64,000 nt of DNA from Orbicella franksi (GCA_964199315.1 OZ116703.1:29946001-30010000), one strand, 5' to 3'; counted from the stretch's first letter, positions 1 to 29,185 are shown. The notes: generated by a model not told the origin, from the letters alone. Numbers and translations are program-made.

Positions 1-97
1 GAACTTTTTTCGAGGTTGTACTACAAATATCTTACAACTCGATGTCGTTTCAATACTATAATATATGTGGTAATCTGTGTCAGTTTGACTTTCCTAT

Positions 98-247
98 TGT
101 TGGGAACTAGTCCCGAGACCCCTCTCGGTCCCGGAATCCGGGACATAGATTGTGTATGTGAGGAGATCGCACATGGCATAAATACAGTTTCTCTTGCTGT
201 TAATACCTCGTCTGTTCCTTGCTTCTCGTGGCACGCAGCGCTAGACT
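98..247 (+). repeat. 5' LTR (150 bp)
   Basis: TGTTGGGAACTAG...GCGCTAGACT, identical base-for-base to 4915-5064 by manual comparison. Confidence 0.95.
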
Positions 248-265
248 TGGTGTCAGAAGTGGGAT
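248..265 (+). other. Primer-binding site complementary to the 3' end of tRNA-Leu
   Basis: TGGTGTCAGAAGTGGGAT is the reverse complement of ...ATCCCACTTCTGACA-CCA, the 3' end of eukaryotic tRNA-Leu(CAA). It abuts the 5' LTR. Confidence 0.85.
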
Positions 266-348
266 CAACCTTTTTTTTTAGAACCGCCCCAGCGAAAACT
301 TCGATCACGAAACCTCTTCTCGCAACGTTACGTTGGATACACAAACTC

Positions 349-3300
349 ATGGCGTCGAACCTCAAGCGCCCAGAACTCAACCTAACCGGAAACATTTCCG
401 AAAATTTTAAAAACTTCGAAGTCAGGTTCAATGATTATTGCGTTCAAGCAGACTACCGTAACCTGGACAAAGACCCAGAGACGGAGCCAGCCGAGTATTA
501 CAAGAAACCCCAGCTCGAAATCGCCGCACTTCGATCGGCCATGCCAGACGAAGCACTTCAGGTAATACGATACACGATAGAACCTCAGATCGCGACTGTT
601 CACAGAGCCAAACCTTGGATATGGATGGCGAAACTTCGCATCCACTACACGGGATCGACCGGCAGTTCAATTCTGGCCGACAGATTTAAGTTTTGGGGCC
701 ATAACCAAACCCTGACCGAATCGGTACAAGCATGGGAAGTAAGAATTAGGCAAGCCGGAAGCCTGTGCTCTTACGGAACACTCAGTGACGAAATGTACCG
801 CGACAAATTTATATTTGGACTCAACAACGACGCCATGCGAGCCGAGTTGCTAAAAACACATCTCAAGCCTGACAACACACCTAAGAGCATGGCAGATGTG
901 GTGACCGAAGCCAAGGCCCTAGAGTCTGCCTACACCGCAAACAAGCTGATAACCGACTCCTCAAAATCAACCACCGAGGAACGAGTCCACTGGGTGAAAC
1001 ATAAAGAAATGAAACTACGAAGAGAGCCTGGAACATGCCACTGGTGTGGAGACAAACGGGGACCTCACCCATGGAAACAATGCCCAGCACGGGGCAAAAC
1101 ATGCTCGAAATGCGGTATCAATGACCACTTCGCCAATGTCTGCCTGGCAAACGGCCAACCACTCCAACGACGGGGAGGCCCATTGCCTCCTTCCACTCGC
1201 AACAACCGGAACCCCAGCCAAACACCCAGTAACAGGGGCAGCAGTCGACGTCGGGAAGATGTGCATCACTTGCAATTTAGTGGAGACGAACCAACCGACC
1301 ACATGGTATATGCGGATTATTATCACGAGCAATGTTACTCTCTAGGAACTCCACAGAAGAAGAGGAAATACTTTGTAAAACTGGCCCTGTCAGCTACCGG
1401 CTCACACTTCCAGCCAATTACATTCCAAATTGACACAGCAGCCTCGTGCAACACCCTATCTCATAGTACCCTCACCACTCTAGGCCAAGACATCCACATG
1501 TCAAAATCACCTTTTCTCTTACAACCATATGGGAACACTCGCCCACTGAGACCTTTGGGCCAAGTCGAGCTGCTATGCCAAAGGAAAAATCAGTATGTCA
1601 CCCTAACCTTCCAAATCCTACCAGATGACATCATGGCCAACAAGCCCGCCCTCTTATCAGGGGGCGACAGTGAAAGATTGGGACTTATCAGAATTGAATC
1701 AGACACTATCTTCTCTCTATCTCCGTCAGTAACGATCGCCCACTACAACGAAGCACAGGACACCCCGCCCACTGCACAGGAAATGCAAGCACAAGAGCAA
1801 GTGGAATGCAACCACATCGAACAACTCCACAACAACAGACCAAGCACCTGCAACCCACTCCCTTCTCCGTCTCAACCGATCAACATCCCTGCTAAACGGC
1901 GACTACCCCCCGCAGGTGCGCTTCAAAAAGAACACATTCTAATGGAATATGCTGAGAACTTTGAAGGTCTCGGCTGCCTTGGGCCCCCTGTGCATTTTGA
2001 AATCAAACACGATGTAACACCAGTTCAAATGCCTATCCACCGCATCCCAGTGGCCAAACGGGCGGCAGAAAAGAGTGCCCTAGACAAATACGAGAACGCC
2101 GGCATCATAACTAAGGTTGATGAACCAACTCCATGGTGCTCAAATGAAGTCATCAGAGAAACTCCCAGAAAAGTCCGACTATGCATCGACCCCAGCCAGA
2201 CGGTAAATAAAGCCATCCTTCGTCCCATTTACCAAATGCCAACCCTCAACGAGCAGCTTCATAAACTAGCCCATGCAAAATGCTTCTCTCTTGTTGATGT
2301 ACGCGATGGATTCCTCCACATACCTCTTGACGAAGAGTCCTCGCGCATGACCACAATGCACACCTCTTATGGCCGCTACCGCTGGCAACGCCTTCCCTTC
2401 GGGATCTCAAGTGCTCCAGAAGAATTTCAGATGCGACTTATTTCTGCTCTGGAGGGTCTAGAGGGCATAATCTGTATAGCTGACGACATTTTGGTCTTTG
2501 GAGAGGGAACAGATTTCACTGAAGCTGAGCGAGATCATGATCGTCGCTTTGTAGCCCTAATGGAACGTTGCCTCCAAAAGAACATTAAACTAAACCCCAC
2601 AAAACTGCAGTTCAAGTTACCAGAGGTGAAGTTTATGGGCAACATCATCACAGCAAATGGGATGAAAGCTGACCCTGACAAAGTCACTGCGATAACTACT
2701 ATGCCCAAACCGAGAAACAAGGCAGCCCTCTTACGCTTTCTGGGAATGGCCAACTACCTATCGCCATACTGCTCAAATCTGAGTACCGTCATTAGACCCC
2801 TCACTGCCCTAACACAGAAAGATCTCCCATTCTCCTGGACAGAGGTTCAAGAAAGAGCATTCAATGATGCAAAGCAATTGATCGCCACTGCACCAATCCT
2901 CCAATACTATGATCTAGCGAAACCTGTGGTACTCCAAGTAGACGCCAGCGAAGAAGGCCTGGGGGGAGCGCTCCTCCAACCAAATGCTGACGGTAAACTC
3001 CAACCAGTCGCCTTTACCTCAAACAGCCTGAACAGCACAGAACAGCGCTACTCTCAACTCGAAAAGGAATGTCTTGCCATCTGCAACACGTTTGGGAAAT
3101 TTGATCATTGGCTATTTGGCAAGTCAGACATCACAGTGCACACCGACCACCAACCCCTAGAAACCATCTACAAGAAACCACTTCATAAGTCACCCGCACG
3201 TCTTCAGCGAATGCTAATGCGACTTCAGAGATATCAGTTTAGCCTACATTACAAGAAAGGTACAAGCCTTCATATAGCAGACACACTATCCCGCGCTGCT

Positions 3301-4812
3301 TTACCCACCCCAGTGCATGCAAATGTAACAGGGTTTGAAGTGTTCCGCCTTGAACTTGAACACTCCGAGAATGACCACAACCCCCGTCTCACAGATGTCA
3401 CAGAAGAACTCCTCAAATCAGAAACCAAAAGGGATCAAACCCTGACTGATCTACAACAAACTATCATCTCTGGCTGGCCCGACGACAAACAACACCTGGC
3501 CACCAACCTCCGCCCTTTCTGGACCTTCAGAGAGGAACTAAGCATACACAATGGAATCATTTACAAAGGTCAGCAAGTCCTAGTTCCACAGTCCATGTAC
3601 TCAACAATGCTTGGGAAAATACATGCGAACCACTTTGGAGCAGAGTCAAACATTCGCATGGCCCGCGAAGTCCTATTCTGGCCAGGCATGAGGAAAGCCA
3701 TTTCAGACATGTGCGACACCTGCAGTGTCTGTGTCCAGTACAGTAAAACTCTTACAAAAGAACCTATGAAGTCGTTACCAATCCCAACGCAGCCGTGGCA
3801 AATTGTGAGCCAAGATATCTTTAGCCATGAGCAGAAGGACTACCTGGTTACTGTCTGCCATTTCTCGGACTGGATAGAAGTCGACGAACTCCAGGACACC
3901 CTCTCCGCCACAGTAATAAACAAGACCAAGGCCCACTTTGCGCGGTTTGGCATACCACAGATGTGCCATACTGACAATGGCTCACAATTCGCAAGCAAGG
4001 AATATGAGGACTTTGCCACACAATATGGATTCAAACACACTACCTCCTCACCATATCACCCTAGAGGCAATGGGAGAGCCGAAGCTGCCGTCAAAGTGGC
4101 CAAAACAGCACTGAAGAAATCCACTGACCTCCAGTCCGCACTGCTAAATTACAGGAACACGCCGCCCCAGGGACTCACATATTCACCTGCACAGCGTATG
4201 CTCTGTCGACGTACAAGAACAACACTGCCAACACCAAACCACCTCATCAAGCCTTCACCCGTGAACCTAGCTGTCGTCACTCAAGAGCTCACCTTGAAGC
4301 GAGCTGCGAGCAAACGCTACTACGACAGCTCACCAACCAAAGTACATCCCGAGCTTGCTGTTGGCTCAAGTGTTTATGCGAAACCTCCACCTACACAGAG
4401 GGGTCATCCATGGATACAGGGAACTATCCTCTCCCAGGACAGACCCAGATCATACACCATTCAGACACCGAACAGCACCATCCGTAGAAACCGGGTTCAT
4501 ATCACGCCAACAGTTGAACAGTCTCCTCCACCAACACAGACCACCCCTCCGCCACTGATCCAGGAACCACCACCGGACAACGGCAACGTCACCATAACAC
4601 CACAAGCAGAAGAAACTGTAGTTACATGTAACAATCATCCCCCAGCGCAGACACAACACGCAGAAACAGAGAGACTCTCAAAAAATGGGTCCACGAATCT
4701 TGCAACTCTAGCCAGCCAAGACAAACCTACAGAACCCATTCTAGGGAACACAAGAACAAGAACGAGGATCATCAAACCTCCTTCGAGGTTTGAAGACTAT
4801 GAACTGACCTAG
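349..4812 (+). CDS. gag-pol: Gag-Pol polyprotein (1487 aa from the first ATG after the PBS)
   Basis: Zinc knuckles (CHWCG...H...C; CSKCGINDHFANVC), aspartic protease (FQIDTAAS), RT (LPFG; IADDILV), RNase H (VDAS...EKECLAI...TDHQPL), integrase HHCC and DDE core (SQDIF, HTDNGSQF, GRAEAAVK), and the terminal RIIKPPSRFEDY motif. No internal stop or frameshift. Confidence 0.95.
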   Translation: MASNLKRPELNLTGNISENFKNFEVRFNDYCVQADYRNLDKDPETEPAEYYKKPQLEIAALRSAMPDEALQVIRYTIEPQIATVHRAKPWIWMAKLRIHYTGSTGSSILADRFKFWGHNQTLTESVQAWEVRIRQAGSLCSYGTLSDEMYRDKFIFGLNNDAMRAELLKTHLKPDNTPKSMADVVTEAKALESAYTANKLITDSSKSTTEERVHWVKHKEMKLRREPGTCHWCGDKRGPHPWKQCPARGKTCSKCGINDHFANVCLANGQPLQRRGGPLPPSTRNNRNPSQTPSNRGSSRRREDVHHLQFSGDEPTDHMVYADYYHEQCYSLGTPQKKRKYFVKLALSATGSHFQPITFQIDTAASCNTLSHSTLTTLGQDIHMSKSPFLLQPYGNTRPLRPLGQVELLCQRKNQYVTLTFQILPDDIMANKPALLSGGDSERLGLIRIESDTIFSLSPSVTIAHYNEAQDTPPTAQEMQAQEQVECNHIEQLHNNRPSTCNPLPSPSQPINIPAKRRLPPAGALQKEHILMEYAENFEGLGCLGPPVHFEIKHDVTPVQMPIHRIPVAKRAAEKSALDKYENAGIITKVDEPTPWCSNEVIRETPRKVRLCIDPSQTVNKAILRPIYQMPTLNEQLHKLAHAKCFSLVDVRDGFLHIPLDEESSRMTTMHTSYGRYRWQRLPFGISSAPEEFQMRLISALEGLEGIICIADDILVFGEGTDFTEAERDHDRRFVALMERCLQKNIKLNPTKLQFKLPEVKFMGNIITANGMKADPDKVTAITTMPKPRNKAALLRFLGMANYLSPYCSNLSTVIRPLTALTQKDLPFSWTEVQERAFNDAKQLIATAPILQYYDLAKPVVLQVDASEEGLGGALLQPNADGKLQPVAFTSNSLNSTEQRYSQLEKECLAICNTFGKFDHWLFGKSDITVHTDHQPLETIYKKPLHKSPARLQRMLMRLQRYQFSLHYKKGTSLHIADTLSRAALPTPVHANVTGFEVFRLELEHSENDHNPRLTDVTEELLKSETKRDQTLTDLQQTIISGWPDDKQHLATNLRPFWTFREELSIHNGIIYKGQQVLVPQSMYSTMLGKIHANHFGAESNIRMAREVLFWPGMRKAISDMCDTCSVCVQYSKTLTKEPMKSLPIPTQPWQIVSQDIFSHEQKDYLVTVCHFSDWIEVDELQDTLSATVINKTKAHFARFGIPQMCHTDNGSQFASKEYEDFATQYGFKHTTSSPYHPRGNGRAEAAVKVAKTALKKSTDLQSALLNYRNTPPQGLTYSPAQRMLCRRTRTTLPTPNHLIKPSPVNLAVVTQELTLKRAASKRYYDSSPTKVHPELAVGSSVYAKPPPTQRGHPWIQGTILSQDRPRSYTIQTPNSTIRRNRVHITPTVEQSPPPTQTTPPPLIQEPPPDNGNVTITPQAEETVVTCNNHPPAQTQHAETERLSKNGSTNLATLASQDKPTEPILGNTRTRTRIIKPPSRFEDYELT

Positions 4813-8999: not shown

Positions 9000-9650
9000 T
9001 TATCTCCGAAAATTTCCATTCTCCACTGAATTGTGTCCATACTGAAGCATACTAACGTCCTGTATGTATTCAAAGCTGAGTTTTCTTTTCGCTTGTAAGT
9101 TCACTTCTGAAGGAAAGAAAGCGCCTTCGTTCACTGTAAGGAATTGGGTTACAAATTTACCATACTTTGGCTGGAACAAGGAAGCAGCGAGTGTTTCATG
9201 ACTGCAGTTTTTCTTGGAAACTTCGGAAAAGGTTAAGTTGATTCGGCTGATCGATCTTATGTAGCTAGAGTCTGGTTTGCGGCCTTGAGACCCTTCAGAG
9301 CTCGGTTCCGGCGAAAGGAAGCTTTCATCAGTTTTATTACTTCGTTTAATGGGCCGTTTTTCAACAGCCCAGGTTGAATTGTTGAAAGTCTCTTTTGTTG
9401 CGCTGTCCTCTTGCTTGTTAACTAGTTCGCCAGTGCAATTTGTTGATTCGGCGTTTAAACCAAGAGCACCCGAGTTTATTTTACTTATCCTTTTCAGCAA
9501 ATCACGCGAGGACTTGTCATTCTTCCAAAATAGTTTGTGGACGCGAAGAATTTGTGGTTGACGAGCAAGAGAAATGTGGTCGGTTTTGTCTGCCAGCCAG
9601 CCATTGCAAACACCTTCTGCCACGTTTGGTAATGCTGAAAGTTGTGCCAT
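9000..9650 (-). CDS. Orphan RKPDS-motif protein, paralogue 1 (216 aa)
   Basis: ATG at 9650 (the track's 9668 start is GTG). Shares the ordered blocks ALPNVAE, LRVHKLFW, RKPDSSYI and EYIQ with the ORFs at 14.5 kb and/or 18.0 kb. Strong splice acceptor at 9755-9756 upstream. Confidence 0.6.
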   Translation of the reverse strand: MAQLSALPNVAEGVCNGWLADKTDHISLARQPQILRVHKLFWKNDKSSRDLLKRISKINSGALGLNAESTNCTGELVNKQEDSATKETFNNSTWAVEKRPIKRSNKTDESFLSPEPSSEGSQGRKPDSSYIRSISRINLTFSEVSKKNCSHETLAASLFQPKYGKFVTQFLTVNEGAFFPSEVNLQAKRKLSFEYIQDVSMLQYGHNSVENGNFRR

Positions 9651-12600
9651 TTCGTGTAGATGGAACACTTTGCTTAATTAAAGATTCTCCCTTCGATCTT
9701 TGTTGTCTTATTTGTTGTGACAAAATTGGTCGCCCAATATCAAACAACAGCCTTCTGTAATGGAAAGAGCAGAATGTGATCAGGGAAAAAGCTGCAATAT
9801 TAAACCTGTTCCGGTGCATGTATTAATGTGAGGTTACACAATATACCGGTAGAAAAAATTATTTTAACATCGTCCAACTAGGTGGAAAATCGGTTGAGTT
9901 CTTTGAATTTTCACTATTGACTTCTGGTTATTGGCTTTTACAGTTCTTTCCTGGCAGAAAAATTCCTCAGGTTTGCTTGTGATCACTCGAATGAAGCACA
10001 TCGAGCAGTACATTTATGAGTTAACCAATCACTTTAACTATACAATGTGCATGATAATTAATCTGTCGAGTCTTGTTGAGCTGCATGTTTTTCATGTGAT
10101 GTTGTTCTTTTGACTTTTTCCCTCCCACTTTTCCTGTCGGAATTTTATCCTGGCTCCGTAAGAAGGTAAAGAGGTGAAGTGACAAAAGGGTAGAAATGGG
10201 CGTACGATGGTGTGATCTTATCACGCAGTAAATCACAAATCGCAGTTAAGAAGAGAGCTATTCTTACAAGAATGATACAAAATCCCACATACTGTATGAT
10301 GCCGGCGGATCATAACATGTTTACAATATCTGAACAAGAACGAAAAGGATGCTGTCATAGCTATCAATTGTTAATTTGATTTACGCTCAATAAAGAGCAA
10401 CACAAACTCATCAAATAAAAGAAACAGTTGTTATACTTACTGCTATTTTCTGCTTTTCTCGAATTCTGTAAAATAGTGAAATAACTGCTCACGTGTAGTC
10501 TTCATTTGTTGCTAGCGTTTACGTAGTTAATTCTTGTTTATGGCAGTGCACACGACTTGATTATACTGTGAAATTATATAACAAATAGCTTGATTTACTG
10601 CTGACATCACTTTGGAAACTAGTGACACTTCAGTACTTTATATTGTAGTTACCAACACATTTCAATTAACTTCCAAACTTTTACAATGGCATAAAGACAA
10701 ATTGCTTCTGACAGTAACCCCCAACCGAGTAGAAACTTAGCCAAGTAGAAACTTAGTGACATTTTTGCACTAAAAAAGAAATAGAAACAAAGTTAGTTGA
10801 ATTTTTATAATATTTGCTACATCTAAAAATCTTACTTCGCAGTAAATGTCAGTTTCAAAGTGACTGGGTAATGAGCGTCGCAAAATGGTTACTTTAACTT
10901 TTTTACTTTTTCAAGAGATTTTGAGAAACTCGTTGAGACATGTTAGCATACTATATAATATGAACAATGCTTTCATGGTAGCTTTTTTTGTTTTCAAATA
11001 CGAGTGATATTTGTCTTTGTTTAAGGCTAACAAAGAGGAGTCTGCAAATTAATCCTGAATTGAACTGGTCCTGAATTGAACTTTTAGTAGGCTAGATTGT
11101 TAGTTAATACCAGTTCACATTCTAAACATCTTAGGTCAAGGCAGTTGAGTCTGTGTTCGTTTATTCATTTATTTACTGAAGCGTATTTACGAGCTGGCCA
11201 CTGGTCGAGTGCTAATCAAATAATAAAAAAAACAATGCGGTCACTCGGCGATTTACTTGAAAGCCAATACTTGACCTCAATACTCGTGTACGTAAGTGTG
11301 TTTGTTTGCTAGAGAAGCAATACTCGTAATTACTTCTTCCTTTTAGCAGCGTCAGCATTACAATGCAAGTCATGCAACACAACTAGCTTTGACACAAGAT
11401 GTCATTTAAGAGGAGTCAGTAACAGGTATCATGTTTTTGTCCACTAGAGCGCTGAAGGTCTTGTAATCCCCCAGTTTACTGGACTTTTTACTTCATTAAT
11501 TAATGCTAATTCTTGAAAGACAGCTATAAATACTTACAATTTCGTTTTCTTTTTCTCATTTGCGCTGTTTCCGGTCCTCCTCTCGGCTCGTCTTAACTAC
11601 CAATTGGTCATGAATTTGTTGTTAAGGAAGGTTTGTAACCGTCATATTTTGAAAACCAGACCTAGTAAGGATAAGCTTTTTGGACAAGTTTGTGCCATTG
11701 AAGAATCCTGCAGATTTAAAGTTTAAAATCACGGCCATATTTGACCAGTCACATGACCAGAATAGAAAAAACCCTAAAACTTTAAAAAAGGCATTTATAT
11801 CCGAAAATTAAAATCAGTCTCAATAGATTACGACGGTCCACAAGCTTGATGCTACATATGGGCTTTATGAAACTCACATTATCATAAAATTTATCAGGTA
11901 ATAAACACTCGTATTAACAGACTTTCTACAGCAGTTACGTGTTCCTCTTTTACTTGTAGAGAGTAATGCCATGCGCACGATTATAAAGAAGGCTAAGTTA
12001 TTTCTGGTTTATAAGAATAATCGGAACTCTTCCTCTTTTCTTCTACGTTTTAGGGATTGTAAGGACCGTTCGCGCTAATTGTTTCTGCGCATCCTTACTG
12101 CGCACGAAAATTCACACGCCACGTCATACATCGATGCGCGCGCTAAGTAATAAAATGAACAATGGTAGGACAGATGGCCATTGCTATAGCTTTACCTGGA
12201 TTTATCGATCTTGGACGTTCGGTGACCCCCATTTTTCTTTTGATGGATCATTTTCTCTACCGATTTTCTACGTTTAGCGAAAAAATGAAGAAAATCTATC
12301 AATTAGAAGTTTGATGTTTTTGCAAAATGCACGATCGGTTTCCATTATTTTTAGCTCTTTGTTTATCTGTGCGGCGGCTTCAAATACCTCTTGAAGGGTT
12401 AAGGGTTGGCAACATTTGCAATTATTTACGCAACAGACCCACTACTACAACATATGACTAAGATCGTTTCCCTCCGTTAACTCACCAAAGTAGAGCATGC
12501 TGAATTACGTGCGCCGTTTTCTCAAAATTAGTGTAGTTTTCCTTACGCTTTATCTTTGAAACGAAGTCGGTGACCCCCGATTTGTTTGCATTTCTGACAC

Positions 12601-12833
12601 AAGTAACTCATTATCTGACTGCAGGGTTACGGACTGACACTAGTTACGCACGCAAAATCATATTTTTTTTCAAAGCAAACGTTCCCTCATGTAAAGTTCG
12701 CCATTTAGCACTGCAAAACGCTCCAAAGCTTCCCTCTAAATATCGCCTTCAGCAGTCCGTTAGCAACTGCTCTAACTCTGTAGTTAAGAAGGACCCCCCT
12801 TACTCGTCTGCGCGATACTACCTTTAAGTTATT

Positions 12834-13322
12834 GGTACTTAATTTCGCAGGTACTTTATTTCGCGAATTTGGCGAGACAGTATTTCGCGGGGTTTTATTA
12901 TCGCGATTTCAACAGGCAAATATGAAAAGAGGGCATTAAATTTCGCGATTTCGGCGGTGTCAACTTCATGTTATTTTTCAAAAGTCTGAACTTTTCAGAA
13001 TTTCTAGATAATTACTGGAACAAGCAAAAGGCATAACGTTATTTAACAACAGAAGATACAAAATGGAACTTACCAGTAAAACCAGCAATAGTTTGTGTAT
13101 TTGTCGATACATATCCTGTATATGTTGTTGTTGTTGTTGTTGTTGTTGCATGTTAATCATTTTTTTTCTGTGATTTGAATTTTCTATATGGGTGTTAAAT
13201 TTCGCGTGTTTAAATTTCGCGAGGATTTTTATTCGCGGGTCTTTAATTTCGCGATTTTCGCGACTGTTAATAAATCGCGAAATTAAAGACCCGCGAATAA
13301 AAGACCTGCGAAATTACGTACC
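12834..13322. mobile_element. MITE with AATTTCGCG-rich subterminal repeats
   Basis: TIR of about 30 bp (GGTACTTAATTTCGCAGGTACTTTATTTCGC vs reverse complement of GCGAATAAAAGACCTGCGAAATTACGTACC). Multiple internal TTTCGCG units and an internal (TGT)n tract. Confidence 0.65.
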
Positions 13323-14532
13323 TTAGTTTCCTCAGATTTTATGGTGTGATTTGGAGCCTGCCAGATGAATACCATGCAAGAGTAACGAATGACGAGTATT
13401 AACTATTTGGTAGCTAGACTATCTTACTTAACTGAATTAAGAGGTAAAACATCGAGAAAAATAAATATCCTCACGGAAAATGGATACTGAATTATTTAAC
13501 CAGCTTTTATTTCCGACATGCAATGGTGGAACGCTATGACGAAATGGTAACTGATACCATCAGAGCTAGGCGTTATCGCTTCATCTCAGTCATTGGCACC
13601 GATACCAGCAGTCTTTGCGGCAGTTCGTCAGATAACAGTTCTCTCGAAAGAGTGTTACCTGGCGACGCAGAGAAATAATTGGTCTTAGTCCTTTCACATG
13701 CATATCGAAAGTGACATTGACAATAGGAGATAATTTTTATTTTAATTACTACAATGGAATGTCTGGTCCATTTATACCTATGGCGTGGATTGCTAGCCGT
13801 TTTATTAACACTCGGACGTACAAGGGAATGGGACAGTGTGACATAGAGAAAGAGAAAAAGCTAGAGAAGGGCTGAGAGCCATTCTTGTCAATTTTTTCTC
13901 CCGATTACATGAAAGTGTTTCACTTTGGGATGCTGATATTTTCAGACGCATTTTGAGAAAGAACTGTTTCTCTATTGCTTTTAACGTTGCTATGGTAACC
14001 GTGTTTTGATTTTACCTAAAACTGCAAAGGACCGATTTCCTGGGATAGTGGTTCGTTCCAGTGATATTCTTGTCGCGTATACGCTGCGTAATATGCAACA
14101 TGGAATAAAAAAACGGCTTTTTAGACTATACCAGGCATAAAACGAGTGTTTGCATCCGGTATAAGGCAATAAGAAACAGCACCAATGTTCATCGTCTGGT
14201 TTTCTCGTACGAAACAAAATCAAAGACCCCATGTTCATGAATATAGACTATCAACACAGTTACGCGGATCGGTTCTGACAAAACAATCTTAATATTTATC
14301 AATACCTGCCACAACCTAGAGGTTCTCAAGCTATTACAAGCAATTGCACAATACTTCCAAATGGCTGCACTGAATAAATTTTAATGGCCCGGGGTCACAG
14401 AGCTGTCTGATGCACAGGTTTTTGTCGTCAAGTCCAACATTATCTCCGCTAATTTAATTTTATTCCGCTTTCAGGTTCATCTAATCTCTATATCACTATC
14501 ACAGATCAATTGTCATTGTAACCCCAATTGGG

Positions 14533-14997
14533 TTACGCATTATGCTTTAAGCAAGACGTGTTCGTTGGCATGATTCCATTTATCAAACCGATGTATGTAG
14601 AATCAGGTTTACGCGTAGAAATTTCCTCCGCCATCAGCGAATTTGTTGGTAGTGATTGATGGAGGCTAAAACCTTTATTGCCTTCCTTGACGCCTTCTAA
14701 AGGATATCGTTCAGCAAATGTGCTAAGGTTCCCTGTACTATAGCTTCTTTTAATCAAGTGTTTTGGTCTCGGTTCAGTTACTTGAACGTTCATGGTATCG
14801 ATTAGATTTATTCCAGGTTTAATTGCAAATACAGACATTTTTATGGAACTCATTCTCCTCAGCCATTCTTGGGAGATATTGCCATCTGTCCAAGGCACCT
14901 TTTGAACTCGAGGGATTGTAGATTTAGCAGCCACTACTTCACCATTTGTTTCACTTTCTTCCGATATACGTGGAAGTGGATTAAAACACTTTGCCAT
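14533..14997 (-). CDS. Orphan RKPDS-motif protein, paralogue 2 (154 aa)
   Basis: ATG at 14997. Blocks NPLPRISEE, PRVQKVPWTD..SQEWL and RKPDSTYIGLI. A clean 85-nt candidate 5'UTR intron lies upstream (donor GTAAGA at 15168, acceptor TTTTATTTTGCAG ending 15084). Confidence 0.65.
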   Translation of the reverse strand: MAKCFNPLPRISEESETNGEVVAAKSTIPRVQKVPWTDGNISQEWLRRMSSIKMSVFAIKPGINLIDTMNVQVTEPRPKHLIKRSYSTGNLSTFAERYPLEGVKEGNKGFSLHQSLPTNSLMAEEISTRKPDSTYIGLINGIMPTNTSCLKHNA

Positions 14998-17900
14998 CGT
15001 TCTGAACAACACCGGCTAAAAAGTCTGGAAAGAAGTGAAAAGCGAAGCTCCCAGTTCTAAACACCTGTGGTGTGTTAAACTATCTGCAAAATAAAACGAA
15101 CATAGTTTCAATACACTTAGTTGTAGGCGCTCGATGCTCCCACGTGATTACATTTCTTAGCTTCTTACCAATTTCTGACGAATCTCAGTGAGTCGAGTAC
15201 AACAACAACCAAACAAACACTGAGAAAAACCCGCAAAAAGTTGACTCAGATGAATGACCTTTCCAATGCAATTACGTAACGACGCTCACGAGGTGAACGC
15301 CACAAACATTCGCGCACCTCACTTGTGCCTGGTCTAACAAATAATTGGATGTGAGATAAAGCAAGACAATTACGTGCAAAGCTTATGGGATTATTTTCGA
15401 TTTGTTCTGCTTTCCGTTACCAGTAATGGACGACCTTTTGATCACTTAAGCATTCCTGTAGTGAATTATAGATAGAACTGTTCTTTGCACTTTTTGTATG
15501 AACGTTATTAAAATACCAGCGCATTCTAATCCATTTTCACGCAAATATAGTATCGTTGCTTGTCATTTTTGTACAGCCAATATATTTAAACCTGCTTTTG
15601 CAATACATTTGCTTAAAATCTTTAGAGGCATTTTCAGACGTGGAGAAAGCGCCCGCAAAAACATGAGTCATAAAATATCATGTACAAACCTTAGTAAATT
15701 AACGTACAACCATGCACATAAACAGATATAACGAATGGTTCTGCTTTTCACGTTGTGGTCAGTATTAAGTTGTTGTTTTGCTGCCTGGATCAACAAGAAC
15801 GATTGTGGTACGAGGCACGCGTACAGCAAATCTTGCTAAATCTGTAGTAAAAGCAGAAAAAAAGGTCTTAAACTTTTAAGCCGCTCACCCCTCTCAGATA
15901 TAACTTGGCCGATAACAATCAATCAATCAAAAAAAGTAATGCATACTGTCTCTTAAAGGACTTGGTTCTTTTCAATTTTGTGCTTTACCTCCTGCTGAGA
16001 GATAAGTTTCAAAGCAAAGCCGTTATGCTCAATTGGCTGTTTGTACCTTCCATCAACACTTGTTTTGTTTCTTTTGTTCTCGTGTAACTTTAGTTTATCA
16101 ACTTATCAGCACATACCAACAGAACTACAGGACCTTTTCAGCGACGACTGTTCCCTGTACCTGGTAAAAGAACTACTGAGACTCGTATGATTGTTATTGA
16201 ACTGCTCCGATAACTAAAGGTGCAATATAATTAACGCTCACATCAATAGCAACCGATATTTTTGGGCTGGAATTCGAAACGACAAAAGAGACGCTTAATA
16301 ATCCAACCGCATTACTGGACTTCATTGTAGAAATACAATGGCCACACAGAAACCTGCACAGACAGCGAGGAAGCAAACGAACAAAACAAACTATAACTTG
16401 GAATTGCACTGCTAAAGTAATCAGCTCATAAGTACTTTAATATCAGCTCACTGATATATTTTGTGCAAACTCTTTTATACTAGCCTAATATCAACTTGTG
16501 TTCACTTCGGGATATTGTGATCTACATGAGCATATTGAAAACAATTTGCGTCGTTTATACGAGGGAAAAATGCCATACAGACGATCCAAGCGTCCGCCGG
16601 TGAACCTCCGCCCTATCACAGCACAGCATAATTGCTTTATCAAGTTATCAACATTAGATATAAGTTGGATGTCATGAATTGTTTTCGTGACTTTAATATT
16701 TGTAAATGAGTATGTTTTTTTAGTTATTTCAAGCGTCCCAATAATTATAATTACTACTTAACTTTTTATTTATTTATTTTTTACAAGGTTAGGTACTTGA
16801 CACTTCATTAACTTTTTTTTTTCATTTCATGTACTTTCAAAGTCCTTGTCTACACGAGTTAGATGTTCATTCCAATCTGAGGCCGGGACTTGCAGTTTGA
16901 TTATAGTACATTAGACCGGCTACGCAAGCTTATGATTCTTAATTTTTTTTTTCCAGAGAACGCTATATTCAATTTTATAGATCATGATCAATCCAGTTAA
17001 CGGATACTCGATATTTTTAAGTTTGATTATAGTTAGAGGAAAGGCATTAAATTAATTCAACGTGACCATACTTCTCTTGGCCACGAAGGGGCTGGAGGAG
17101 GCATGGAAACAAGTCAATCACTGCATGGGAAAAAACGTCAAACATTCAACGATGAGGGAAGCAACATGTAAAAAGGCAATCAACGACTACCAGTAAAATG
17201 CATGACAAATTCTTATGATTTATTCTTTGGTCAAAGCTTGGCAAACGAACATAGCCGGATCATTTCTTAATATACATTAACTCAATTTGATAAAATCTAA
17301 ATTTCGTCAGATCTTTAACTGGTTTTACAACATTCGTGTCTCATGTTGTCCATGACTTCTAGATTGTAGCAAAGAACTGCACTTTCACTGAATATATTTG
17401 CAACTTAACCCGTAAGGGATATCACACGGCGGTCGACGATACGGAAAATATTGCACTTGAGTCCAGGAGGAGTCTCGTATTTTACGAGTGGTGAATTTTC
17501 CACCAAAACACTGGTGCCTGTAATATAATAAATTACAATATTTCACTGAACAAATTATTTGTTTATTTAAATTATATTTCACTTTACTACAGCAAGCATC
17601 TAAAGAAGAGATCTTTAGAACTTTATCAACTGCTTCGCATATGTCCATGATTTTTGTCCTGGTGAAAAGGCTTGGCAGGTGCGAACCCATCGGTAGTTTT
17701 CTATATTGTAACATGTAAAGAATACCTTTTAATGGAACGACAAGAAAGTTCACCTAGGAAATAATGATCAAAAAAGTAACAGACACCATAAAATCTACCC
17801 ACACAAAGAAGTCACTGGCGTTGAGGATAGCATGATCACACACTATTCTAGTCCCTGATAATAACACCGTCATTCAAATTAATTCAATGAAACCTTGAGA

Positions 17901-18028
17901 TGATTATGTGAAAATCGTCGTAAAATGAATGAAAAACAAAGGATTTTATCCACTAAATGACCTAAACCATTTCTCACTCTTATTTTACCAGGTTTTAAAA
18001 CTGCCTGATCGCATTTTACATGTCGGAG

Positions 18029-18927
18029 CTAGCATCCTAGACTTGCTATTTGTTGAATATATTCGGAACTGTTCGACATTTGACGACGAGTGCTTCTTTG
18101 AGAAGAGCAGAAGAGATTTCTTGGAGCAAACATGTTCATTTGTATGCAATTCAAATTCTTACAGTTTTTCTCCTTTTTGGAGTCAGAGTCCTTTGTGTGA
18201 TTGTGTGCCTCGTCATCATGACTTCTACGCTGTGATTCTTTCTGCGTGAATCCACTAATCAACGAGATGTAAGTAGAATCTGGTTTACGCACGTGATCAG
18301 TTTTAGAAATAGGCTTGTTCCTGACACAAGGACGATCGCGAATATGGTCTTCTTTAACAACTCTTCTGAGGCGCTCGATCGACACGCTTTTACACCCTGC
18401 AGGCGAATCTTGGTTGGAAGCTTCGAATGCAGCCCGCTTATCAACACTGCTGCGCTTTTCTCCCGGCATCCTCTCGGCGCGATCAGAGCCTTTAGCCCTG
18501 GAAGAATCTAACGATGTCAAAGTAGATCTTAGCGTGTTGATTTTGTACAGCCATTCGTCCGAGAGTTTGGTATCCGTCCAATTCAATGTTTGAACCTGAG
18601 GAACGCGTGTATGAGGCAGTGCCGGTTTTTCTATTTCTGCCGTTTCGTCTTCCTCTATTACCCGAGGTAGAGGGTTTAACCGCTTTATCAACGGATACGA
18701 GTTCGAGCGGGGGCGGTTATATTTGACTTTGGGCCAGGCCACGTTGCTGACTTGCTCCACGTACGCTCTTGACAAGCAGGAGGAACATGTATAGGATGAT
18801 GCAGATTTCAGAACATCCTTTTGCCGGCGAAAACTTAAGACTTTCTCTGCCAGGGTGTCTCGTCTTAAACGCTGTTCTTCGTTGAGGCTCCTGTCGCCCG
18901 CAATATCGACCAGGAAAAGCTCCATCT
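18029..18927 (-). CDS. Orphan RKPDS-motif protein, paralogue 3 (298 aa from ATG 18925; main exon)
   Basis: Long ORF preceded by the acceptor TTTTCAG (18928-18929). Blocks RPRSNSYP, NPLPRVIEE, PQVQTLNWTD..SDEWL, RKPDSTYISLI and EYIQ. Confidence 0.75.
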
Positions 18928-21777
18928 CTGAAAAGCAAATAGCAGATTAAGTTCTGTACATTAACCATTTGCATCCAGGACTAAAAGCCTAGCTGAGACA
19001 TGACTCTAAGAAAAGCCGCCTTCAAGAAGCCGTTTAAAGAAAAACCGCTTTCAAGAGGCCGTTTAAAATCACGCTTAACATCTTAGGCTCGAGATAACCT
19101 CAGCAGATATAGCCTGACAGACAAGACACAAATTTGACGGTGTGGCCGGTCAACGACTTTGGTTTCATCACCACTTCAGATTACACCATTCCAGAATTGC
19201 ATTTTTTTCTACAGATAGACAAGGAACTCATTTGACCATGCAGGTAAGGTGGCCTGCCTGTGCAAAGAACAGGTGTCTTTATATATGACTCCAGGGCCTT
19301 ATTTTGCCAGCACCCAATGAAATCTTCGGTAGTCCGGTAGAGTTTGGCCAACCGTTTAAAATCATTATTTTTTGTGATAATTTGTGGTGTTTACTAAGAC
19401 TTGAGTCCTAAATAATTATAACCGTGAGACTATTCAGGCATATACAAAATATTATAATAAGGCATTAAAATTATATAAACATTGGTTACGTAATATATAA
19501 TTGTATAACAACACTGTTATATAATAATGTAATAAGGTTGTCTCGTAACATTTATAATTAAGAGCATTACTAAGGGCGCTGAATTTTTTCGCTCTACTAA
19601 CATTTTCTGCTGCAAGTTCTAAGCGTCAATTCTCCTCACCGAATTTCATATGCCACTCTTTACAACAATGTAAAACTAGCGCCGATAATTTGCCAGATCT
19701 TGACTTTTTCTATAGAGGAAGATTCCACTATTTTTTTCTCCCCATTACGGAAAAAAAACAATCGACATACAATTTTGAAATGTACTTCGGAGTGATTCGC
19801 TGACATTACTCCGCTTTGTTTTGAATAACAAACTAGCTCATCTTAACAGCATATTCAAGCCCAAAAACAAATCATGGAAATGTTAAAATGACGTTCGGCT
19901 TCAGACCAAAAGTAGGCGTTTTTATTATGGGAATAACAGAGAAAAACAATGACCGGGTTAAGCTTCATTCGGTTTACAATTGTATCAGATGTTTGTCTTT
20001 CAAATGAATCTTCCTCGTAAAACATCCATTGTCTGTTCCTAGAAGCACTTCCCCAGGCTAAAAGGAAAAATTATTTTGGGACCTCACCGGATCAAACAAG
20101 ACTTACTAACCTTTCATTCCCTCCGACGCGGGTTTGGTGGCACTAAGCCAAACCGACGACAGTTAGGAACAAGTGCTCGAGCGAAGTCATTCGAAATGAA
20201 GATCCGAGATGGATATCTTAAAATAATTATTGTACTTTAACCTGATTTACAGTTAAGCAAGGCGGTAGATATGATGAGAGCGGTTTATACGGTTGCGTTA
20301 ATACCGATTAAGAACACAGCGCGATAACACAGCAGACAAGTATGTTGAAGACCCCTCGGTCAAGGTAAATCTGAAATATCTCATATTTATCCCTAGGGCC
20401 AGGGTCAAACCACATCTCGGAAATCCATTTTTTAGTTCTGCAAATCCTGTTTCTTGTAAAGAATTTTCCATCAGATTAACGTTTTCATAGTCTAATATTC
20501 AGCGAAACCGGCTTGAAGAACATAAATATACCTGTCATTTTGATAAACTTCCTGTTTGGCATAAACCTGTTGGAATATATATCGCGTGAATCGTAGTGAA
20601 GCTGTTCTGCCAATGAATCACTTTTGTCCTGTTTTGAACACGCTATGACGAAATATTCACGCAGATCTCGGCAGAAGATCGCTACAACTGAAGACCGGCT
20701 TAACGATTGCTGAGATCGAGAAATATACTCATGTGATTTGCACGCATGAATATTTTATGAAGGCTGTTTAGTCCACTGCCAAGGGCAATATGTCACACTT
20801 TGACAGGCCGCATAATGGAAAGCCGAAATGTAAACAAAAGCAGAAAAAAGAAATTATAACTTGTTTAGACAAACTTGGCATTGAAGGCAAATATCGACCG
20901 TGTCTCCTCTCGCAAATTCAACAATGAAATTATCATGAGCATTATTTGCGTTTAATATAACATAGTGTAAACTTATTTTTCTTTATCCTGGTTTTATAGT
21001 TATTTTCCCGATTTTGTCTGAATACGGAAGTTGTAATCTTATGGCATCCTCCCTCCAAAACACTGGAACGAAACTGCGTCCAGTTTCTCTTGAGACCGGC
21101 TGGTACGAAACTACAGTGTAATATAAGTTGATCATTCGAGCGATCCTTCTCGATAGCGAATTTTCTGGTATTAAAAACGAGAACTTCGAGTTGATAATTT
21201 TATTCCATTTCGCCGACGAAAACATTCGCTATATGACAGGTGAATACATTTCGACAAATGTAGTCGACCGCTCGGAGGCAACCCTTTAAATTCCAAATAA
21301 GTATAAATCGGCTGTCTTGCACACGCACACACAAGTTTATAAGTGTCGACTATATTAACTCGTTAAAACCGTGTTCTCTACAATCTCGTGGCAAAATGAA
21401 CGAAAGGTGTCTGGAACAGACTTAATTAAGTTAACGATTTTCAACACGTCATGTGTCGAAATTTCCAGCTATCCGCCTACACCTCCTAGCAGAAATTCCT
21501 AAATTGTTTACCAGATACTTAACGTATTTTCACGTAGAAGACTTGCTGCGATTTTAAGAGTCTTCCTCGCTACGATAGCGGAACAGATTCAAAGACATAA
21601 AAGGCTTTGAATAAAAGAAAAGGCCAAAAAATATCTGGGTTAGTTTCGACGATAAGTCACGCGATAGCTGGTTAGTTATGCTTTGTACACAAATACGGCT
21701 TAACTTGCGATGACTGCTGAGATATCTGTTCTAAATTATAAACTGAAAAGTCTATCGAGACTTGAGAAATGTATTAC

Positions 21778-21817
21778 CTGCAAAGATATCTTCCACGTCT
21801 TTCTCTACAGCTTTCAT
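21778..21817 (-). CDS. Candidate upstream coding exon of paralogue 3 (MKAVEKDVEDIFA)
   Basis: Strong donor CAG|GTAATA at 21777 in phase 1. It joins the 18927 acceptor in frame (G+AG = Glu) to give ...VEDIFA-E-MELFLVDI. A palindromic TTATATATAA at 22132-22141 could be a TATA box. Confidence 0.35.
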
Positions 21818-24800
21818 GTCGACTTGCAATTGCTGTGACTCGCTCGAGCGGCGATCCGATAACGACTGAGGTGAACACTTTGCAACAACTGTTTTCAATT
21901 TGAGATTTTGCCGATAGTCAGTTTTGACATCGCAAACAATCGCCAGTGACACGTGTCTATTGAAATAACCCCGCTACTGGCTGAGAAGATTCCGCAGTCA
22001 GGAGAGCAAAGTCCTTGTCAGCCTCGAGTAACTTCTGCCCCGCGACGAAACTAATTTCTGTCAAAAAACCGTAAAATTCGTGTTTAAATCCACACTCGGG
22101 GAACAGATCCGGAAGCTATAGCGAGAGTGGGTTATATATAACAATGAAATAGTATTTTCGTTCTGTTTGTTTTGGAAACATCCAGCAGTTCACGGGTTTT
22201 AAGAATGCACGTTTGAAGTACCTTAACATTAATGCGCTCAACTAAATCTCCATTATTTTTTGATATTTTCTTTCTAGAAATATGAGCAAAGAAAAATAAG
22301 TACTAAAACAATGAAGGTGCCGTTAATTACACTTATTTTTTCTCTTTTGTACTTGCTTTGTGTCAGATGTTTAAAAATATAGATGTTAATTTCGGCCCAC
22401 GCCTGATTGCGTTTTGCGATAAATGAATTTTTTTTAGAATTTCGGTGAATTTTAAAAATTTCAAGTCAGCGGGATATGATATTAGATCACGTACAAGTCG
22501 GTATAAAAGAAAAATAATAGCATTTAGCAGATCTTTGGGAAAATGTTGAACAGCACTTCAAAAAATCGTTACAAACAAAGATTTTGGGGTAGTTGTTTCA
22601 AAAGCATCTTGAAACGCAAGGCTCAACAAATTGTAAAAAAATATATTGCATCCCTGAACAGCTGTGAAAAAAATATGTCTTTGGTTTGTCAGTGTTCTCA
22701 TATAATGAAACGGCAAAGATTGAAGCTCTATAAAATGCAAACCAAACGCTTTCTCGTTTTCCAAACTTTCATTTATATATACATATAGTTAAACTTTGTA
22801 GTTCTTCTCTCTAACAGTTCTCAATTCCGTCTATAACACTTTCTCAGGGTCTTGAAGTCTTCAAGTGCCGCTGAGAGAAAATAATGCAATACATAAATGC
22901 AATAGATATACACAAAGTGGTTTGTAGCTCACGCAATGAAAACCATGTCCTTTGAGTATTTTTTTTTTCTAAAAAATAATTTTTTTCATCGATAGAAAAA
23001 AATTTTTGCGACTTTCTTTTCTTTTCGTAAGAATGCGAAAAATGTGCGCGAATGTATGACATGATACGTGACTCATTTTTCGCGCCAATCTCTGTCAACA
23101 AAATCATGTAATGAATTGTTTGCCTGTCTCATCGTGGAATAACAAGAATCGGATAATCAAAAGCGCGTATTTCATTCACCTTTGAAATTGGCTGAGAGTT
23201 CTGCCTGTGTTGACAATGCGTCAAACTCACCGAGGAACGTGATAAACGCTCAACTGATATCACCGGGATTCAACGTAAACATAACGTAAGACAACCAATG
23301 ATCAAAATCTGTTGTGATCCAATTTCGGACACACGCGCAAGGATATTTTGCATAGTTTGAAACATAATTCTGCTCATCTTAAAATTTTAAGTGCAAATAT
23401 ATCACACCCCTTGCTTGCGTTCAAAATCTTTGATTTCATGAGAGGAGATGCTATTCGTTAAGAGCATTTCGTGAGAGACAATGCTAAACGTTTGATGAAA
23501 GCATTTTCGTTGAATTATATATTCAGCCTGCAAACGCTACGAGTAACTAAATACATATGTAATACCCAGATTTTACTTCTGAATTATGTATATGTTATTT
23601 CAGTAAGAAATGAAAAACATGCTATTTAGAATGTTAGGAGGTACATGTTTAAGACTGCAATTCTCCGCTTGTAACTTAAAATTGATGTGTTCTCCTGTTG
23701 TTTCTCGTTTATAATAGCAAAATACAACTCCAGGCAAGTCTTTCAAAGGTTCATTTCCCATTTTTGACAGATGGGCTGACAACTATCACGTGCGTACATA
23801 TTGCCGCTTGGCAGAGATCAATAACTTCAGTGAAAATAACAATTTAAAAATTAGACTTGTACACTGAGGATAAAAATAACTCGATTGAGCTATGATTGTC
23901 CCCTAAAAATAACGCGAAGATTATGAAATAAAATCCCTTTAGGTGCTTCCGCTCTGGAAACAAAGAACAAAACAGACAAAATAAAACAAGAGTGAAAAAA
24001 AAAAAAAAAAAAATCATCTCGAAAAACATGTCTCATACAAAGTATTTTACAAACTCTTGAACACAAGTGAACGTGTTGAGAAGAACGTTTTTAGTTTTTA
24101 CTACTTGTCAGGGCATACAGCCAGACCAAGTTAAAGTTTCCTGTTCGGTGAAGGAAATGCGTGGGTCGATCAATTCTGTTTTATTTCAGGTAAATTTCGA
24201 GCCGGCTAATTAACGTTCAAGAACAAAATCAATAGCCGAGAGATCTACCATCGATAGTGAAGCGTACAAGGGACGAGTACATCTCCACGACTCTTTTCTC
24301 CATCATGCAGAGAAATAATCATATTTCACACCCGCTTCCACGTCCTGTTAGCCGCGTAACATTTCTTTAGAAATGCAACTATTTAGCGCATAAGGGGGCC
24401 GTGAAAAGCATGGAGTTCACAGTTTTCAAGAATAAACAGAAACGAACTTCTGATACTGGTAGTAGTGGTATTGCTAGAGTAGATCTGCCTGTCAGTTCTC
24501 AATTAAAAGGCGGGCAGGATAGAATTCGGTTTTATAGCAGCACTGAGCGAACCTTTGAGAGGGTTGGAATTCTCACATCATTTCCTTAATTTGCCATAGC
24601 GAAAGTCTTAGCATAAATCATAATCCCGCCCTCCTGAGGAGGGCTTAATCAGTGAAGTAAATAATTGCCTGGTTTGGAGTGGCGAAGAAGAGGAACACGA
24701 GATGTTTCGTCAGGTTTTCATTCGTACTAAATACACGTTAGACGAGTTTATTATTGTATGCTATTCCCGAATTTTCTAAAATCAATAACTTCCGTTTACA

Positions 24801-28225: not shown

Positions 28226-29185
28226 TTAGTTTACACTAGAATTTTCCAGTCTAGTCGAAGAGCGCAATTCAATGGAATTCTTTTCTTTTGACTTGTTTGT
28301 AAGGTGAAAACTTTTGGTTTTCCAGTGTAACAGCCTCTGCAAAGATCGTCTGAATCTCTCGCTGCGAAGACTGTACAAAAATGGATTCACTGTTGAGTTC
28401 AAGCAGACCAAAACTGTGCCAACCTTGTACGCAATGGAGCCATACTTGAAGCCAAAGTACGAAAGAACATAAGTGACCGTGTCAGGCAGGAGAAACACTC
28501 CGTGAAGAACTGTGACAATCAACAGAAGTTTGGTGACGTTCTTTCTTTGTTGTAGCAGCACTACCTGGGTTGAGCTGGAACTTTGACGGTTCCAAAGCTT
28601 ATGAATTACTCTTCCGTAGAGAACAGCCATAAAGGTAAACGGGAAAGCGAAGTCAATGAAAAATGTCATCAACGTGTAAGCCTTGGCATATCCAATGTCC
28701 GGCCATTCTTCAATACAAATTTCGTGTCGCTTGCTGTACTTCATTACTACAATTGCCGGGATCTCAGACACGACTGCCACTAACCAAATCGCTAAGATTC
28801 CTCGTTTTACTTTCTGTGCTGTGAACCTTCGAGTATTGCTATGTGGAAACAAAATGGAGTTGTACCGTTCAAAGGCGATTAAAACCAGTGTAAAGACTGC
28901 AGCGGCTGTTCCAATCCAACTCAGGCTTCCTCCAGTCGCGACCTTACATAGAAGGTCACCCAGTAAAGCACTAGGGTGCTGAAGGAATGGACGAAAAATA
29001 TACTGCGGCGATACGAAGAGGGCGAATGCCATGTCAGCAGCGGCAAGGTTTATCAAGAGATAGTTCATTGGCATTCTCATGGATTTGGTTCGGAGCACAA
29101 CAACACAAACCAAAGTATTCCCTAGCAGATTTACAGCCAGAAGGATAGAGAAAATTACCATGAGAATAACCTCTGTGTACGACAT
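28226..29185 (-). CDS. Intronless class A (rhodopsin-family) GPCR, neuropeptide/QRFP-receptor-like, 319 aa
   Basis: Seven hydrophobic segments. GN (TM1), NLAAAD (TM2), Cys in TM3 and ECL2, ERY (TM3), W (TM4), P5.50, LP (TM6), NSTVNPFLY (TM7) and helix 8 FRRSL. ATG to stop with no interruption. Confidence 0.93.
   Translation of the reverse strand: MSYTEVILMVIFSILLAVNLLGNTLVCVVVLRTKSMRMPMNYLLINLAAADMAFALFVSPQYIFRPFLQHPSALLGDLLCKVATGGSLSWIGTAAAVFTLVLIAFERYNSILFPHSNTRRFTAQKVKRGILAIWLVAVVSEIPAIVVMKYSKRHEICIEEWPDIGYAKAYTLMTFFIDFAFPFTFMAVLYGRVIHKLWNRQSSSSTQVVLLQQRKNVTKLLLIVTVLHGVFLLPDTVTYVLSYFGFKYGSIAYKVGTVLVCLNSTVNPFLYSLRSERFRRSLQRLLHWKTKSFHLTNKSKEKNSIELRSSTRLENSSVN

Follow-up and report, generated by a model that had tools for sequence, protein, structure and literature searches.

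Three open reading frames (ORFs) that lie in tandem on the minus strand of a 64,000-nucleotide (nt) stretch of Orbicella franksi DNA (GCA_964199315.1, OZ116703.1:29946001-30010000) constitute a tandem family of disordered motif proteins that is undescribed and restricted to corals, and one of its blocks is assignable to a known motif class. In the following, this whole stretch is referred to as the window, and all positions are counted from its first nucleotide. The frames are ORF1 (9000-9650), ORF2 (14533-14997) and ORF3 (18029-18925); they belong to genes 1, 2 and 3, and the corresponding orthologue groups are named G1, G2 and G3. By a modest margin of confidence, we favor reading them as three separately transcribed tandem paralogues coding for coral-only, intracellular disordered proteins that would act via short linear motifs, with one shared block, block A, docking the B56 subunit of protein phosphatase 2A (PP2A). 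That the family, its gene models and the selection acting on it are together real, we regard as close to certain. A preliminary description of the window had reported the three same-strand frames, and their coordinates proved exact. It had also put the trio forward as an undescribed system, which overstates the evidence; the trio is a sound lead, and not yet a new kind of system.

The three frames share the short blocks A, B and C, which align in identical order in all of them, as previously noted. Blocks A and B are 22, 14 and 16 residues apart in ORF1, ORF2 and ORF3, respectively, and blocks B and C 68, 79 and 83 residues, a similar spacing in each case. Comparing ORF1 to ORF2 by BLASTP gave an E-value of 6e-6, and a tblastn search of the window with the annotated ORF3 protein recovered ORF2 (E 1.7e-8) and ORF1 (E 6.5e-4). 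At the profile level, hhalign of the ORF1-group against the ORF2-group profile yielded a probability of 99.1 (E 6e-19). As these similarities exceed chance, the three frames are homologous at the sequence level. ORF3 is 99% identical to the NCBI entry ‘uncharacterized protein LOC110063966 isoform X1’ of Orbicella faveolata. The spacers between the blocks are indeed rich in Ser (12-13%), Glu (8-9%) and Lys (8%), in agreement with the preliminary description.

Gene models, expression and conservation of the trio

Each coding sequence (CDS) lies whole within one exon behind a 5′ intron. The following exons were assigned:

9000..9754, minus strand: terminal exon of gene 1, from acceptor to stop (CDS 9000-9650, 216 codons)
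10441..10523, minus strand: non-coding first exon of gene 1, as far as it is covered by RNA; followed by the donor GTAAGT from 10440 on
14446..15085, minus strand: terminal exon of gene 2 (CDS 14533-14997, 154 codons)
18029..18927, minus strand: main coding exon of gene 3 (298 codons from the inner ATG at 18925; stop 18029-18031)
21779..21817, minus strand: short upstream coding exon of gene 3 (13 codons, in-phase splice to the main exon; found by tblastn with residues 1-13 of the annotated protein, 100% identity)

A splice acceptor shortly 5′ of each ATG, already read from the sequence in the earlier work, is confirmed by RNA contigs for ORF1 and ORF2 and by the annotated protein for ORF3. 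In the case of gene 1, a polyA RNA contig (826 nt, depth 17.7) joins 10441 to 9754; the 686 bases that it skips are bounded by GT and AG on the minus strand. Both the acceptor, with a polypyrimidine tract and CAG, and the donor GTAAGT are canonical, and a TATA-like box is found at 10573-10579, about 50 nt upstream of the end of this contig. In the case of gene 2, two RNA contigs from different studies break at the canonical acceptor at about 15085, and RNA contigs stop at 14446-14447, 12-18 nt beyond an AATAAA signal at 14459-14464. The first exon of gene 2 was not located: the extra 432 and 633 upstream bases of the spliced contigs are not within 15086-15299, and the contigs retrieved by an exact-protein look-up were all collinear with the genome, with no spliced ORF2 transcript recovered. 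In the case of gene 3, the acceptor AG is at 18929-18928 and the junction falls two bases before the inner ATG; the upstream exon ends in the donor GGTAAT, with the junction after its first G, and is 87% conserved at a distant coral locus. The Kozak context of each ATG is good, with a purine at -3 and a G at +4.

Several non-coding islands around these exons (22132-22532, 20821-20898, 16220-16260 and 15914-15999) are still alignable, at 71-85% identity, to a coral in which synonymous sites have reached saturation. The first of them lies 5′ of the first coding exon of G3, and the two between G3 and G2, at 15914-15999 and 16220-16260, may be candidates for the promoter or the first exon of G2.

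The common strand and the acceptor directly 5′ of each frame could also be understood if the three ORFs were alternative or successive exons of a single gene, and the same is true of the ORF2 first exon that was not located, with its 432-633 upstream RNA-contig bases unplaced. We nevertheless consider a single gene highly improbable. The exon of ORF1 has two in-frame stops between acceptor and ATG, and the exon of ORF2 has an in-frame TAG 21 nt 5′ of its ATG; because of these stops, both exons are read as complete cistrons and not as downstream exons of ORF3. Furthermore, ORF2 RNA terminates at its own AATAAA, ORF1 has its own first exon and TATA-like box, and each protein type is called separately and with constant length in many species.

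Transcription, a point raised in the preliminary description, was found in the form of spliced polyA RNA. In the contigs of RNA libraries the exons are covered and most intergenic bins are empty, which argues against DNA carry-over. The polyA RNA contigs of four runs from a single study contain 100% of the sampled words of the ORF3 exon; in three other studies the share is about 80%. Transcripts of ORF1 and ORF2 are assembled at a depth of 7-18 in small polyA metatranscriptome libraries. Two polyA raw-read runs, in which 1.5-1.9 gigabases were sampled, gave zero reads on ORF1 or ORF2, and this counts against the view of three transcribed genes. Since transcripts occur in some polyA libraries and ORF1 or ORF2 reads are absent from these two deep runs, expression is strongly sample-dependent, seemingly being on in some samples only.

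Between ORF1 and ORF2, the region 11900-12700 shows an RNA-contig depth in the thousands, with many variants and loose ends at 12067/12068 and 12624. This region looks like an abundantly transcribed interspersed repeat that lies outside both genes.

The relatives of each protein form a separate group, within which the length is constant. ORF3 has relatives in 37 clusters, down to 42% identity and including Montipora; ORF2 has relatives in 27 clusters, including Oculina, and ORF1 in 20 clusters, with Acropora ORF1-type proteins recovered by a deeper profile search. The trio is complete, with its order unchanged, on several contigs. In a much more distant species, the order G-protein-coupled receptor, G3, G2 is kept, and a G1-type gene is on the same contig. 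A tree of the shared core separates G1, G2 and G3: G1 unites Orbicella, Acropora and the distant species, G3 unites Orbicella, Montipora and the distant species, and G2 unites Orbicella and the distant species, its complex-coral members having no names. Because each group spans Orbicella and the distant species in this tree, the triplication is placed before the deepest split sampled. The trio predates the split of robust and complex corals, as members of both are present in each gene group. The suggestion of an old tandem family is therefore supported by the separate orthologue groups and by the gene order kept in a still more distant species.

Nei-Gojobori ratios of non-synonymous to synonymous substitution (dN/dS), calculated against two to three other species, were 0.31-0.37 for ORF1, 0.30-0.37 for ORF2 and 0.15-0.22 for ORF3. 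In distant pairs, amino-acid identity was 0.61-0.93 in the blocks versus 0.24-0.58 elsewhere (Fisher p from 0.02 to 6.6e-6), with synonymous sites equally saturated in the blocks and in the rest. It is important to add that this comparison between orthologues is not circular, because the blocks were defined from the paralogues of one genome. The spacers are not neutral, as they contain paralogue-specific blocks, among them the G3 N-terminal part and the final 39 residues of G1. Altogether, the substitution pattern shows purifying selection that is concentrated in the blocks. The motif-level selection proposed earlier is supported by this result, with dN/dS of 0.15-0.37 overall and blocks far better kept than spacers between orthologues.

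These values also bear on the question whether ORF1 and ORF2 arose as duplicates of ORF3 that are now decaying, or are chance frames with no function. Both are shorter than ORF3 and carry no NCBI annotation in this species, and the lack of ORF1 and ORF2 reads in the two polyA raw-read runs could be taken in the same sense. Yet both frames are intact in 20-27 clusters each, to 38-45% identity, at a dN/dS of 0.30-0.37 with saturated synonymous sites in distant pairs, and both have spliced polyA RNA and good Kozak contexts. Decay or chance is accordingly an explanation to which we give very little credence.

To describe the range of the family, a profile was built from 48 members and scored against 1.84 billion representative proteins (E ≤ 0.001). 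This search returned 25 proteins only, namely members of the three types and a single distant G3-like protein, which keeps an RxRRxSxP site, LPRVKEE and RRKPDSSYI and is without block B. In the 497-megabase (Mb) genome, the family profile finds only the three loci (E ≤ 1), and searching the DNA with a degenerate block C pattern gives these three loci again, plus one chance hit. A Pfam hmmscan of 11 members (E ≤ 1) gave noise only, with a best score of 14.8 bits against a cut-off of 27 and with neither IPP-2 nor FAM212 among the hits. Among PDB sequences the best match was ribosomal protein eS1 (E 0.25), which is read as noise; the ESM Atlas gave no credible relative for any of the three proteins, and a literature search by locus names found no paper. 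Judged by these searches, the family is restricted to stony corals. The earlier statement that no described family can be recognized therefore holds as far as Pfam, PDB, ESM Atlas and profile searches are concerned; it is qualified by the facts that ORF3 was already annotated, as an uncharacterized protein, and that block A is readable as a member of the PP2A-B56 LxxIxE class.

Motif content of the conserved blocks

The conserved elements of the three proteins are the following, all on the minus strand:

18692..18715: G3 site RPRSNSYP, with the basophilic-kinase RxRxxS and 14-3-3 mode-1 RSxSxP patterns
18650..18676: G3 block A, NPLPRVIEE; LxxVxE with an acidic tail
14956..14982: G2 block A, NPLPRISEE; LxxIxE with an acidic tail, N-terminal (motif = residues 8-13)
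9615..9635: G1 block A, ALPNVAE; degenerate LxxVxE with no acidic tail; several G1 orthologues have lost it
18539..18601: G3 block B; invariant Trp, then an amphipathic helix; pLDDT in the block up to 85
14851..14913: G2 block B; a helix introduced by K-V-x-W
9486..9548: G1 block B; a helix preceded by RVHK-hydrophobic-x-W
18257..18289: G3 block C, RKPDSTYISLI; R-K-P-D-S-T-Y-I invariant in 37/37 instances
14581..14613: G2 block C, RKPDSTYIGLI
9249..9281: G1 block C, RKPDSSYIRSI
18032..18169: conserved blocks at the C-terminus of G3, namely KNCKNL..C..F.PR..FCS and SSEYIQQ.., the latter ending in GC
9003..9119: G1 C-terminal 39 residues; near-invariant among G1 orthologues, containing KRKLSFEYIQ

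The proteins had been described as disordered, and structure prediction agrees. AlphaFold2 models based on family alignments have a mean predicted local distance difference test (pLDDT) of 51.5 for G3 and 53.5 for G1, and are disordered apart from short helices. In G3, these helices are found only at residues 16-38, 119-139 (block B) and 217-224 (block C); in G1, they are found at residues 46-61 (block B), 128-135 (block C) and 192-204 (the EYIQ tail). Reading the three proteins showed no N-terminal hydrophobic stretch in any of them, and they are therefore taken to be intracellular. Two smaller similarities between the first and third copies had been proposed. EYIQ is kept in 27/28 and 33/38 relatives, respectively, while KNC..F.P[KR] proved weak as a common block, most ORF1 orthologues having KKSY and not KKNC.

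Block A is the element that can be compared to a known class. The B56 rule reads [LMFI]xx[ILV]xE, with an invariant Glu at P6, and with acidic or phosphorylatable residues at P7-P9 raising the affinity (PMC10970375). In G3, P1 is Leu in 54/55 instances, P4 is Val or Leu in 55/55 and P6 is Glu in 53/55; in G2, P1 is Leu in 31/33, P4 is Ile or Val in 33/33 and P6 is Glu in 31/33. P3 and P5 vary and the Pro at P2 is fixed, and P7-P9 are mostly E, then D/E/N/S, then E, or more exactly E-[DE]-E in G3 and E-[NSR]-E in G2. G1 has no acidic tail; the core pattern is present in this genome (LPNVAE) and lost in several orthologues. An extended block A pattern occurs in 37/38 G3 and 32/33 G2 proteins, compared to 4.4 and 1.8 expected in shuffled sequences. 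The surroundings of the motif in G3 have no secondary structure in the AlphaFold2 model (pLDDT about 50-56).

B56 genes are present in the genome as multi-exon copies, and nearly identical metagenome contigs proved to be genomic as well. For complex modeling, residues 1-40 of ORF2 were combined with a full-length metazoan B56 from a metatranscriptome. The complex obtained a score of 0.80, compared to 0.49 for the best of three controls, and so passed a mark that was reached by 51/78 solved complexes and by 2/108 mismatched pairs. Between runs, at least 50% of the contacts agree, and the pLDDT of the partner is 44-48. Confident contacts connect ORF2 residues 4-5 and 7-15, thus block A, with the B56 helices HRIYGKFLGLR and ELLEILGSIINGF, which we take to be the canonical LxxIxE groove; in B56, the docking groove lies between HEAT repeats 3 and 4. 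Because such complexes are already solved, the pass expresses likeness to the motif and not binding or affinity. Based on motif conservation and on this model, G2 and G3 probably dock B56 through block A.

In G3, block A is accompanied by a second site. RPRSNSYP lies 5 residues upstream of block A and 9 residues before the first Leu of the motif. Its general form RxRSxS[YF]P is present in 38/38 G3 relatives, compared to 1.8 expected in shuffles, and in none of the G1 and G2 proteins. As this is a site of the basophilic-kinase/14-3-3 type, a switch or a local substrate may reasonably be proposed. In G3 of Montipora and related corals (337-381 residues), the unit of RPRSNS[YF]P, block A and block B is internally duplicated in tandem, so that these proteins carry two 14-3-3-type sites and two B56-type motifs. 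The combination of RSNS[YF]PLI and LxxVxxEE may resemble PABIR/FAM122A.

Block B, in which a basic and a hydrophobic residue precede x-Trp, can be compared to the docking motif RVxF of protein phosphatase 1 (PP1), with the rule [RK]-x(0,1)-[VI]-{P}-[FW]; it should be considered that RVxF-like strings occur in 25-30% of eukaryotic proteins (PMC3735429). The block meets this consensus only loosely, as far as its residues tell. G2 relatives mostly have K-V-x-W. Several details speak against the comparison: the ORF2 of this genome has a Pro at the excluded position x, G1 has K-[LIF]-x-W with Leu in place of Val or Ile, and G3 of robust corals has T-L-N-W without a basic residue. Docking of PP1 by block B is thus kept as a candidate that we hold to be unlikely.

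Block C and the G1 tail were compared to further motif classes, and these assignments were rejected. As a calcineurin PxIxIT site, block C would have Ser at position 3; as a beta-TrCP degron (DSGxxS), its Gly is replaced by Thr or Ala; as an immunoreceptor tyrosine-based inhibitory motif (ITIM/YxxL) or a SUMO-interaction motif, the required hydrophobic position is Ser in G1; and with the FDSGDY of ENSA/ARPP19 it is out of register. Regarding the G1 tail, KRKLSF was considered as a cyclin RxL motif, for which certain orthologues have Thr or Ser in place of the Leu, and the C-terminal Cys as part of a CaaX box, where the spacing is wrong.

The assignment of block A has to be weighed against the possibility that the phosphatase resemblance is coincidental. 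In that case, the blocks would bind to, or fold on, other partners, for instance a kinase, a 14-3-3 protein, some factor of the cytoskeleton or the nucleus, or a complex specific to corals, and PP2A-B56 would have no part. A number of observations weigh against B56 docking and in favor of coincidence. Block C, the best-conserved block, matches no motif class tried, and it has three occurrences in the 497-Mb genome. Block A is degenerate or lost in G1, which is still under purifying selection, so that B56 docking cannot explain the whole family. The plain LxxIxE pattern is found in about 40% of shuffled G3 sequences, and short motifs of this kind, RVxF included, often match by chance. Finally, the modeled B56 is not the coral protein itself, having 82-88% identity to the coral B56 groove exons, and the complex score may reflect the model’s memory of solved B56-peptide structures. 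On the other side, the fixed and variable positions of block A follow the B56 rule throughout, including the acidic tail; the extended pattern is rare in shuffles (4.4/38 and 1.8/33, with 37 and 32 observed); and the model places exactly the block A residues in the groove, well above the controls. Considering both sides, coincidence is a possibility that we take seriously but find doubtful, and docking of B56 through block A of G2 and G3 is the reading that is followed below.

Neighboring features of the window

Upstream of the trio, one further gene belongs to the conserved neighborhood:

28226-29185, minus strand: seven-transmembrane receptor gene, 319 codons

In a distant species, a 7tm_1 gene (394-1257 of the locus) is placed likewise with respect to the G3-type gene, and the neighborhood is thus conserved.

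The remaining features were described from their translations or their repeats. On the plus strand, one frame of 1598 codons (16-4812) reads as an intact Ty3/gypsy-type gag-pol, from translation alone, with visible motifs of a zinc knuckle, protease, reverse transcriptase, RNase H and integrase. On the minus strand, exons at 30969-33986 resemble, by translation only, an Nfo/APN1-type apurinic/apyrimidinic (AP) endonuclease that follows a Lys/Glu/Thr-rich N-terminal region, and three tandem long-exon genes at 36879-59754 are anoctamin/TMEM16-like, again by translation only. At 50028-50877 there are two arrays of a 21-base unit, with about 19 copies each, which are reverse complements of each other across a 24-base gap.

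Proposed role and comparison with known systems

In the proposed mechanism, the proteins would act through short linear motifs and not through a fold. Block A, in the form L-P-x-[VIL]-x-E-E-x-E, would dock the B56 regulatory subunit of PP2A, and the proteins would be PP2A-B56 clients: they might be substrates, they might compete for the B56 groove, or they might, as adaptors, lead the phosphatase to the proteins bound at blocks B and C. The RxRSxS[YF]P site that stands near block A in G3 could serve as a phospho-switch or as a preferred target of dephosphorylation. Block B, with its basic-hydrophobic-x-Trp sequence and amphipathic helix, might be a second docking element, possibly for PP1, and block C (RKPDS-x-YI) would bind some partner. 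Concerning the origin of the paralogues, G2 and G1 may be shortened derivatives that start exactly at block A, with G1 losing block A and gaining a strongly conserved C-terminal tail.

A more far-reaching version would see in the trio a stony-coral innovation, in which small disordered scaffolds unite PP2A-B56 at block A, a PP1-like second phosphatase at block B and a coral-specific partner at block C, with the long paralogue being gated by a kinase and 14-3-3. This version is speculative, and we consider it improbable.

Many genes of stony corals are lineage-restricted and of unknown role, and few of them offer a testable molecular handle. The trio gives a precise and checkable prediction, namely motif-dependent binding of PP2A-B56. 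If this is true, the partners of blocks B and C would open a route to the coral-specific process that is targeted by the phosphatase. In addition, the family is a clean case of motif-level protein evolution, in which blocks are held and the intervening sequence drifts.

Three known systems can be compared to the trio. The nearest feature cluster in the ESM Atlas, with a score of 0.81, is INKA1/FAM212 (PF15342, an inhibitor of PAK4), which likewise comprises disordered metazoan proteins of similar length. Kinship was rejected, as a score of 0.81 is within the range reached by a third of shuffled proteins and hmmscan gave no FAM212 hit (E ≤ 1).

The PP1 regulators inhibitor-2 and inhibitor-3 (RVxF) are, like the trio, small and disordered, and block B has a basic-hydrophobic-x-Trp sequence, with free variation at x, followed by a helix. 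Inhibitor-2 likewise has a degenerate motif that ends in Trp (PMC3735429). The trio differs in having neither a HYNE nor a KGILK element, in having no Pfam IPP-2 match and in meeting the consensus only loosely.

The third comparison is to the clients of PP2A-B56, such as the KARD of BubR1, RepoMan and viral mimics. The trio has no sequence relation to any known client, and it differs from them in consisting of small coral-only proteins whose motif stands at or near the N-terminus and has Pro fixed at P2. What the trio shares with these clients is disorder, Leu at P1, Ile, Val or Leu at P4, Glu at P6 and acidic residues at P7-9, together with a position of the motif in the B56 groove, which for the trio is predicted by the model.

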